Positions 26,118-27,238 of a stretch of 64,000 nt of DNA are shown piece after piece. A program made the translations under genes and the position numbers. Source of the DNA: Octopus bimaculoides (lineage: Eukaryota). The stretch lies in assembly GCF_001194135.2 (NCBI RefSeq), contig NC_068983.1, positions 62,768,556 through 62,832,555 of the forward strand, read 5' to 3'. Position 1 is the first letter of the stretch; each line of letters opens with the position of its first letter. The notes under the pieces are model-generated. The model saw only the letters and a program-made list of their open reading frames with translations. It ran no database searches and had not been told where the DNA came from.

Positions 26118-27238
26118 AAATACATGAATTTATGAAGGATAGCATTCGCCTGACACAATTCGATCTCCAACAAGGGCCCTGGAGACACCTCACGCATCCA
26201 GTATCATTCTGACCACCAAGGGCAAAAGTTGTCTCTCTGCTCTTATTCTCCCGCCAACAAAGTATATGTAATAATATCCATCTACTGTAAAAATTGGCAA
26301 AGGACATCTACAAGTCTTCTGTTCTAAATTCTCACTAAACGAAAATCTGGTGATTAGAAACAAAATAAGCAACAAGGACATCCAGAGGTAATGCAGTACG
26401 ATCATTTCACGCAACTCCATTTAATTGAACAATGCGATCATTACATCAATTTAAATGCAGAGCAATCCTCAGCTGCACAAAGACATAGAATTTAATTAAA
26501 CTAAAACAGATGGACACATTAGTATAATTTTGCCTAAAATCTCCAAGCAATTAAGGAGATAAACAAAGAACATTGTTACATTTCCTTCCACTTAGAAAGG
26601 CAAAATTATACTAAGGTGTCCATCTATTTTAATTTAATTAAATTCTATGTCTTTGTGCAGCTGAGGATTGCTCTGCATTTAAATTGATATAATGATTGCA
26701 TTTTTCAATTAAATGGAGTTGCGTGAAACGATGGTGCTGCATTACCTCTGGATGTCCTTGTTGCTTATTTTGATTCTAATCACCAGATTTTCGTTAGGTG
26801 CTCACTACCGTCCACCTGTTGGCCAATACTATTTTTACTCTTTTACTTGTTTCAGTCATTTGACTGCGGCCATGCTGGAGCACCGCCTTTAGTCGAGCAA
26901 TACAGTTATTTTGATTTCCCTTTTAGAATGATCTAAGGAACGGATGGTTGGAAAGTGTTATGACGTCCTCGGGGAAGCTCTGTGCATCGATGAAGATGAC
27001 CTGTCTGTTTTTTTTTGTGAGAATTTAGAACAGAAGACTTGTAGATGTCCTTTGCTTTGCCAATTTTTACAGTAGATGGAAATATTACAAATACTTTGTT
27101 GGCAGGAGAAAAACAGCAGAGAGACAACTTTTGCCCTTGGTGGTCAGAATGATACTGGATGCGTGAGGTGGCACAATGGCCCTTGTTGGAGATCGAATTG
27201 TGTCAGGCGAACGCTATCCTTCATATATTCATGCATTT
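26118..27238. repeat. Long inverted repeat: arms 26118-26535 and 26598-27238, 62-bp spacer, ~220-bp insertion in the right arm
   Basis: Manual alignment: inner 198 bp has 10 substitutions; outer ~218 bp has about 12 substitutions and 2 indels. Confidence 0.97.
26830..26902 (-). mobile_element. SINE family C, 3' tip, inside the insertion in the inverted-repeat arm
   Basis: CTCTTTTACTTGTTTCAGTCATTTGACTGCGGCCATGCTGGAGCACCGCCTTTAGTCGAGCAA is the reverse complement of the family C 3' end. Confidence 0.9.

Follow-up and report, generated by a model that had tools for sequence, protein, structure and literature searches.

A long inverted repeat of unique sequence in Octopus bimaculoides, probably an old local inverted duplication

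Introduction

In animal genomes, structures able to form dsRNA come most often from pairs of interspersed repeats lying in inverted orientation (Porath et al., 2017, PMC5625713). In the same study hyper-editing tracked the abundance of inverted repeats, and the value for Octopus bimaculoides, in which 0.44% of random 50-mers have an inverted partner of more than 95% identity within 2 kb, was among the highest of 19 species; palindromic repeats derived from Harbinger elements were among the editing substrates in frog. In octopus, introns and 3′ UTRs are enriched in hairpins and contain most of the editing (Zolotarov et al., 2022, PMC9699675).

Long inverted repeats are also characteristic of three other systems. 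The bodies of foldback (FB) transposons and of MITEs with long terminal inverted repeats (TIRs) consist almost wholly of two such repeats and contain no ORF. The hpRNA loci of Drosophila, which are defined by their Dicer-2-dependent small RNAs of ~21 nt, have arms of several hundred bp and a short loop, originate in local inverted duplications, and usually both derive from and target a protein-coding gene. Lastly, the inverted duplications attributed to MMBIR/FoSTeS or to polymerase theta place an inverted copy beside its source, with a short spacer and with boundary filler taken from nearby sequence, and are known as fresh mutations or structural variants with defined breakpoints. Short templated insertions are typical of microhomology-mediated template switching and of polymerase-theta end joining.

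Here we describe an inverted repeat, in a 64,000-nt stretch of O. bimaculoides DNA (the window), that resembles each of these systems in part. As in the hyper-editing substrates of Porath et al. (2017), near-identical segments lie in reverse orientation less than 2 kb apart, with the potential for a long, near-perfect duplex, in a non-coding and repeat-rich Octopus setting, but those substrates are mostly paired interspersed repeats, whereas the arms here are unique sequence and their editing is only potential. With FB transposons and MITEs the locus shares a body almost wholly made up of two long inverted repeats (418-nt arms around a 62-nt core) and the lack of an ORF, yet it has neither a target-site duplication, nor tandem sub-repeats in its arms, nor a second copy detected in ~207 kb. 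The dimensions of its arms and loop, and its probable origin, recall the Drosophila hpRNAs, although any small RNAs from the locus would be hypothetical and its arms have no similarity to coding sequence. It also has the inverted copy beside the source, the short spacer and the boundary filler of the template-switch duplications, but the event was an old one, for which the present-day sequence is the only record.

Materials and Methods

The copy number of the arm was assessed in a sample of ~207 kb, made up of the rest of the window and 147 kb in eight loci that had been fetched for other reasons: three from O. bimaculoides (L002, L005 and L006), one from O. vulgaris (L003), three from Argonauta hians (L007-L009) and one metagenome contig (L004). 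Absence from a sample of this size rules out only families of more than ~40,000 copies in a genome of ~2.7 Gb.

Results

Structure and divergence of the arms

A sequence-only reading of the window had reported an inverted repeat with arms of ~94% identity around a 62-bp loop, and global alignment bore this out. Over the coordinates given in that reading, 26118-26535 is the reverse complement of 26598-26795 joined to 27017-27238, with 393 matches, 22 mismatches and 6 gap columns; the identity is 94.7% if gaps are ignored and 93.3% if they are counted. A repeat search of the window recovered the same structure as an inner pair of arms (26333-26535/26598-26800; 203 nt, 94%, 62 nt apart), an outer pair (26118-26273/27083-27238; 156 nt, 93%) and two connecting pieces (26274-26302/27055-27083 and 26297-26344/27008-27055), and self-BLAST of the window gave E = 5e-169 for the inner part of the repeat and 3e-89 for the outer part.

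The left arm (26118-26535) is 418 nt of non-coding DNA that is unique within the window, and it is followed by the 62-nt spacer, or hairpin loop (26536-26597), which has a small internal stem of its own. The right arm is divided into an inner segment (26598-26795), which pairs without gaps with 26338-26535 at 188 of 198 positions, and an outer segment (27017-27238), which pairs with 26118-26335 with 205 matches, 12 mismatches and 6 gap columns, including a 5-nt tandem duplication of GCAAA; arms and spacer are annotated as unstranded. Between the two lie 221 bp that occur in the right arm only (26796-27016, + strand). The arms therefore differ by 22 substitutions (10 transitions and 12 transversions), by indels of 5 nt and 1 nt and by the 221-bp segment, which is the kind of difference expected of an old duplication and not of an artefact. 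Four of the mismatches fall within 7 nt (26179-26185 against 27171-27177; CCCTGGAGACACC vs CCATTGTGCCACC), a cluster that looks like one complex mutation event as opposed to independent substitutions.

There are many stops in each of the six frames of the arms and the longest arm ORFs (67-76 aa) have no match in Pfam, in agreement with the earlier statement that the repeat holds no credible ORF. For the 76-aa ORF, a search of 5.8 billion proteins found no homologue. A control ORF that spans arm and SINE (see below) had 3 matches only, all of low complexity, among 1.84 billion representatives, and since this control was barely matched, the protein databases seem to be free of spurious octopus-repeat ORFs, which makes the negative uninformative on copy number. 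We found no credible host exon near the repeat. Tandem Repeats Finder reported nothing between 25730 and 28040, so the arms have no tandem sub-repeats. No Rfam family reached its gathering score anywhere in the window; a relaxed search returned only generic long-hairpin matches, and identity with the miRNA precursor MIR8562 was rejected on its score of 83.3 bits, well under the gathering score of 211.

Boundaries of the repeat

No direct repeat of at least 4 nt is present between the two outer flanks, as the sequence-only reading had also concluded in noting no target-site duplication: the 20 nt on either side of the repeat have no 4-mer in common, and there is no TA dinucleotide at both ends. 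The repeat does not measurably extend into the flanks, for which the best local alignment scored 20 against 19.8 +/- 2.5 for shuffled sequences.

Immediately to the left of the repeat is a TA-rich, microsatellite-like tract (26080-26098, unstranded), and exactly at the left outer boundary, on the + strand, are 21 nt (TAGAATCAAAATAAGCAACAA, 26099-26119) that copy a motif from inside the arm. All 21 positions agree with the right arm (26758-26778, reverse-complemented) and 20 of 21 with the left arm (26355-26375), and the motif has no further occurrence in the window or in loci L002-L004. Its likely source is the internal motif at 26355-26381 (+ strand), the right-arm partner of which is 26752-26778. 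We propose that 26099-26119 may be templated filler from a repair or template-switch junction. The position of the filler hints that the left outer boundary would be the repair junction and the left arm the derived copy. The last 9 nt of the TA-rich tract (26090-26098), however, are complementary at 8 of 9 positions to 27245-27253, and the repeat may accordingly once have reached slightly further out; if these nucleotides truly pair, the filler would lie inside the arm and not at the junction, and the argument from the junction would be weaker.

The segment confined to the right arm

The 221-bp segment contains a fragment of a SINE, which, like the 21-nt copy of the arm motif, was overlooked in the sequence-only reading. 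By alignment, 26826-26905 corresponds to the 5′ ~75-80 nt of a SINE that is abundant in Octopus and that, at its full length of ~250 nt, ends in a TA/CA/ACAT microsatellite. The copies used for comparison came from O. vulgaris, from O. bimaculoides and from the window itself (53490-53790), and the alignment showed a SINE head in common followed by complete divergence. Beyond this head, the remainder of 26796-27016 ends in T9 and is assigned to no family. A tRNA search made for the SINE head found none, and a literature search with the sequence of the SINE core as a string found no paper.

The junctions of 26796-27016 are compatible with insertion, in which case the accompanying duplication is poor and T-rich, as well as with deletion across a microhomology of GTG. 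We favour insertion, as the segment is most simply read as one that postdates the duplication of the arms.

Other copies of this SINE were located in the window at 15065-15278, 18447-18703 and 53502-53747 and in O. vulgaris locus L003 at 2677-2882, 3739-3961, 6862-7098 and 14150-14383; the window copies match those of O. vulgaris at 94-97%.

Copy number of the arm sequence

Neither nhmmer nor sensitive blastn detected a homologue of the arm in the ~207 kb sample. The best blastn E-value for the arm was 0.18 in the first set of loci, and nhmmer on the second set was empty. The SINE core of the insert, by comparison, gave 15 + 2 = 17 matches in the same DNA in which the arm gave none, and on the sequence sampled an arm family as abundant as the SINE is excluded. 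The other octopod inverted repeats in the sample have no sequence in common with this one.

Two 22-mers from the arm had 0 matches in the JGI metagenomes, in a pattern scan that has no power on copy number. One of them, the only one scanned against prokaryotic genomes, had a single match there, on a contig of 65% GC, which we rejected as a chance exact 22-mer.

Inverted repeats elsewhere in octopod DNA

The sequence-only reading implied that such a repeat is rare. This was not upheld: in the Octopus and Argonauta DNA sampled, all of it fetched for unrelated reasons, inverted repeats with arms of at least 150 bp, among them comparable ones of unique sequence, occur roughly once per 30-40 kb, and the 0.44% figure cited above (Porath et al., 2017, PMC5625713) also tells against rarity. 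The closest counterpart is in O. vulgaris (OX597819.1, L003 1144-1517/1874-2247), with arms of 381 bp and 94.5% identity around a 357-nt spacer; it consists of unique sequence and adjoins a TA tract. O. bimaculoides has an inverted repeat with arms of 356 bp and 86% identity (L002 7204-7555/7848-8196) and a palindrome with arms of ~285 bp and 85% identity (L006 2723-3293) that is within the range of a RING-finger gene. In Argonauta hians there are an inverted repeat with arms of 2.2 kb and 96.7% identity (L008 6091-12601) and a further palindrome or inverted repeat (L009 11538-11707), and smaller palindromes are likewise present in the octopod loci sampled.

Several of the octopod repeats have arms of 280-380 bp and a total length of ~1 kb, and several adjoin TA/CA microsatellites. 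Repeats of such like dimensions may reflect either a recurrent, microsatellite-associated form of duplication or the existence of many low-copy foldback elements. Unique-sequence repeats of this kind recur in independent chromosome-scale assemblies (O. vulgaris L003 and O. bimaculoides L002).

Sequence context

The window is densely packed with SINEs, with fragments of LINE and Penelope elements and with TA/CA microsatellites. Copies that match its interspersed repeats at 80-97% are present on chromosomes of O. bimaculoides and on OX597819.1 of O. vulgaris. The window contains 12 runs of N, totalling 3,959 N, none of them inside the repeat or less than 1 kb from it (the nearest are 24915-25030 and 29630-30181). 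All 12 adjoin such microsatellites on at least one side, and because these are of the type in which the SINE ends, we conclude that the assembly broke at SINE tails.

Transposon fragments lie on both sides of the repeat. To its left is a fragment of a Penelope-like retroelement (22589-23539, + strand; ORF 22709-23539) with an RVT_1 and HTH_animal region, relatives of which have GIY-YIG; the best named protein matches of its reverse transcriptase are from Octopus bimaculoides, Argonauta hians and O. vulgaris, none exceeding 74% identity, and the fragment is 75% identical in DNA to metagenome contig L004. Together with the SINE matches in O. vulgaris, these protein matches support the cephalopod source assumed in the sequence-only reading. 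To the right are a LINE fragment with a zf-RVT motif (30185-31330, - strand), which has 85% DNA identity to the LOC106878562 locus of O. bimaculoides (L005 9919-10616), and, adjoining it on the opposite strand, a 119-aa ORF with three C2H2 zinc fingers (31711-32070, + strand). The LINE ORFs of the window match LOC106878562 at 84%. Judged by sequence comparison, 30185-31330 and 31711-32070 are best taken as paralogous transposon copies relative to the LOC106878562 locus, and not as synteny. Attempts to reach an orthologous locus by way of the flanking transposon ORFs likewise returned paralogous copies only, L005 having the transposon in common and not the flanks.

Two further repeat families were seen in the window. 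One, also present in L002 and L003, has copies at 8102-8216, 27409-27576, 40128-40371, 43046-43285, 43304-43469, 43549-43688 and 48732-48864; the copy at 27409-27576 follows the inverted repeat on its right after 170 bp, and a cluster at 43.0-43.7 kb consists of three to four copies in tandem or inverted arrangement. The other (1311-1705, 9192-9512 and 45244-45524) is 91-93% identical to O. bimaculoides L002 19394-19772, and two of its window copies are mutually inverted at a distance of 35-44 kb. Small local inverted repeats with arms of 51-53 nt and 94% identity occur at 44956-45008/45545-45597, a pair that spans a 10-N gap (45525-45534), and at 63446-63495/63694-63743. At 27964-28103 a trinucleotide tract of the (GAT/GAC)n type gives rise to a spurious acidic ORF (27751-28119) with no sign of a real gene.

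Predicted folding

The inner hairpin (26338-26795) had a predicted folding energy of -313.5 kcal/mol relative to -86.7 +/- 5.3 for shuffled sequences (z = -42.7), and the full locus -718.5 kcal/mol on the + strand and -751 on the - strand. The predicted helices are of 198 bp (95%) and about 220 bp (94%). The - strand folds more stably because 8 of its 10 transition mismatches become G:U wobbles, vs 2 of 10 on the + strand, an asymmetry that at 10 events is not significant (binomial p about 0.1).

The earlier suggestion of either a duplication or a foldback element with ~400 bp of potential dsRNA fits these energies, with the amendment that the 221-nt segment splits the duplex into two helices of ~200 bp each. 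On these predictions the locus would be at most a candidate ADAR substrate, and that only if it lies within a transcript. In the literature searched we found no paper linking hpRNA to octopus or cephalopods.

Discussion

How did two arms of unique sequence come to lie in opposite orientation 62 nt apart? We favour, and consider probable, an old inverted duplication that took place locally, in a part of the Octopus genome rich in transposons, and that involved ~420 bp of non-coding DNA present in single copy. As the arms are unique sequence, the pair would have arisen by duplication on the spot, and a duplication is preferred to a transposon because neither a target-site duplication nor sub-repeats nor, in ~207 kb, a second copy was found. 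Such an event would have started during replication or double-strand-break repair near the TA-rich microsatellite, with the growing strand switching to the complementary template, copying ~420 nt backwards and then returning. Its product would have been two arms around a 62-nt spacer, together with the templated filler at 26099-26119, taken from inside the arm, at one of the junctions. Afterwards the arms would have diverged by ~5% and gained small indels, and one of them would have acquired the 221-bp segment with its SINE fragment. We take the locus to be, most likely, neutral with respect to selection. Any RNA transcribed across it would form two helices of ~200 bp with a bulge of 221 nt between them, and heavy A-to-I editing would then be probable, as for the many comparable structures in octopus.

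The main rival is a DNA transposon of the foldback or MITE-like type and of low or medium copy number, of which this locus would be one copy, with two TIRs of ~420 bp and a 62-bp core, mobilised in trans by a transposase from another locus. We regard this as rather unlikely, even though much of the structure accords with it: the terminal inverted repeats are long and near-identical, the size without the nested segment is a compact ~900 bp, and an ORF is absent, as expected of a non-autonomous element. The repeat also adjoins a TA-rich tract, which is a common target of elements that insert at TA, and in frog the palindromic repeats derived from Harbinger elements are targets of editing (Porath et al., 2017, PMC5625713). 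In addition, other octopod repeats of similar overall size exist, and the like dimensions of these unrelated repeats (arms of 350-420 bp, ~1 kb in all) could point to low-copy foldback or MITE-like families, and thus against a duplication. That we nevertheless do not prefer a transposon is due to the boundaries and to the copy number. At 5% divergence most target-site duplications would still be readable, yet there is none of at least 4 nt, nor TA at both ends; the arms have no tandem sub-repeats like those in the FB arms of Drosophila; and in ~207 kb of octopod DNA there was no second copy, the other repeats that were found sharing no sequence with this one.

It is improbable that the arms are two independent insertions of one interspersed repeat, in opposite orientation and 62 bp apart, in the manner of the inverted Alu pairs of primates. 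Such pairs are the usual origin of animal dsRNA structures (Porath et al., 2017, PMC5625713) and the window is full of SINEs and other repeats, but the two arms share their start and stop positions at both ends and neither has a target-site duplication, an A-tail or a microsatellite tail of its own. Since the arm sequence is found nowhere else in ~207 kb, two chance insertions at such a distance are very unlikely.

Could the hairpin itself have been selected? Its predicted stability is very high, and the wobble excess and lower energy of the - strand (8 vs 2; -751 vs -718.5 kcal/mol) offer a weak hint of strand-specific conservation of structure. We nevertheless consider it highly improbable that the locus is a functional hairpin-RNA gene under selection, whether as a source of endo-siRNAs or as a dedicated ADAR-bound regulatory RNA, and we hold the same of a young, lineage-specific hairpin-RNA gene on the - strand that arose from a local inverted duplication and feeds an endo-siRNA or ADAR-dependent regulatory pathway. 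The sequence lends no support to an endo-siRNA or hyper-editing role: the arms have drifted by 5%, with transversions exceeding transitions, one of them tolerates a 221-nt insertion that splits the helix, neither resembles any coding sequence that might be a target, and the sole Rfam match is the generic one to MIR8562 (83 bits vs 211). Moreover, given how common such repeats are in these genomes, function should not be presumed for any single one.

Least credible of all is an error of assembly, either a fold-back chimera or a head-to-head join of two haplotypes. The window does come from a gapped draft assembly, with 12 N runs (3,959 N), but a fold-back gives identical arms and not 22 substitutions, 5-nt and 1-nt indels and 221 bp in one arm only. 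Alleles differ by far less than 5%, the repeat has no gap within 1 kb, and comparable repeats occur in chromosome-scale assemblies made independently for O. vulgaris and O. bimaculoides.

We conclude that this repeat, probably an old local inverted duplication, is a typical member of a known and abundant class, and that only evidence of transcription from RNA data would make it more than ordinary. The locus alone matters little, as a further example of the local inverted repeats to which octopus genomes owe their unusual wealth of potential dsRNA, and hence of ADAR substrates. The unique sequence of its arms, though, suggests that part of the dsRNA potential of the octopus comes from small local inverted duplications and not from paired transposons, and the 21-nt filler is a possible mechanistic footprint of how such duplications originate, beside the TA-rich microsatellites that litter these genomes.
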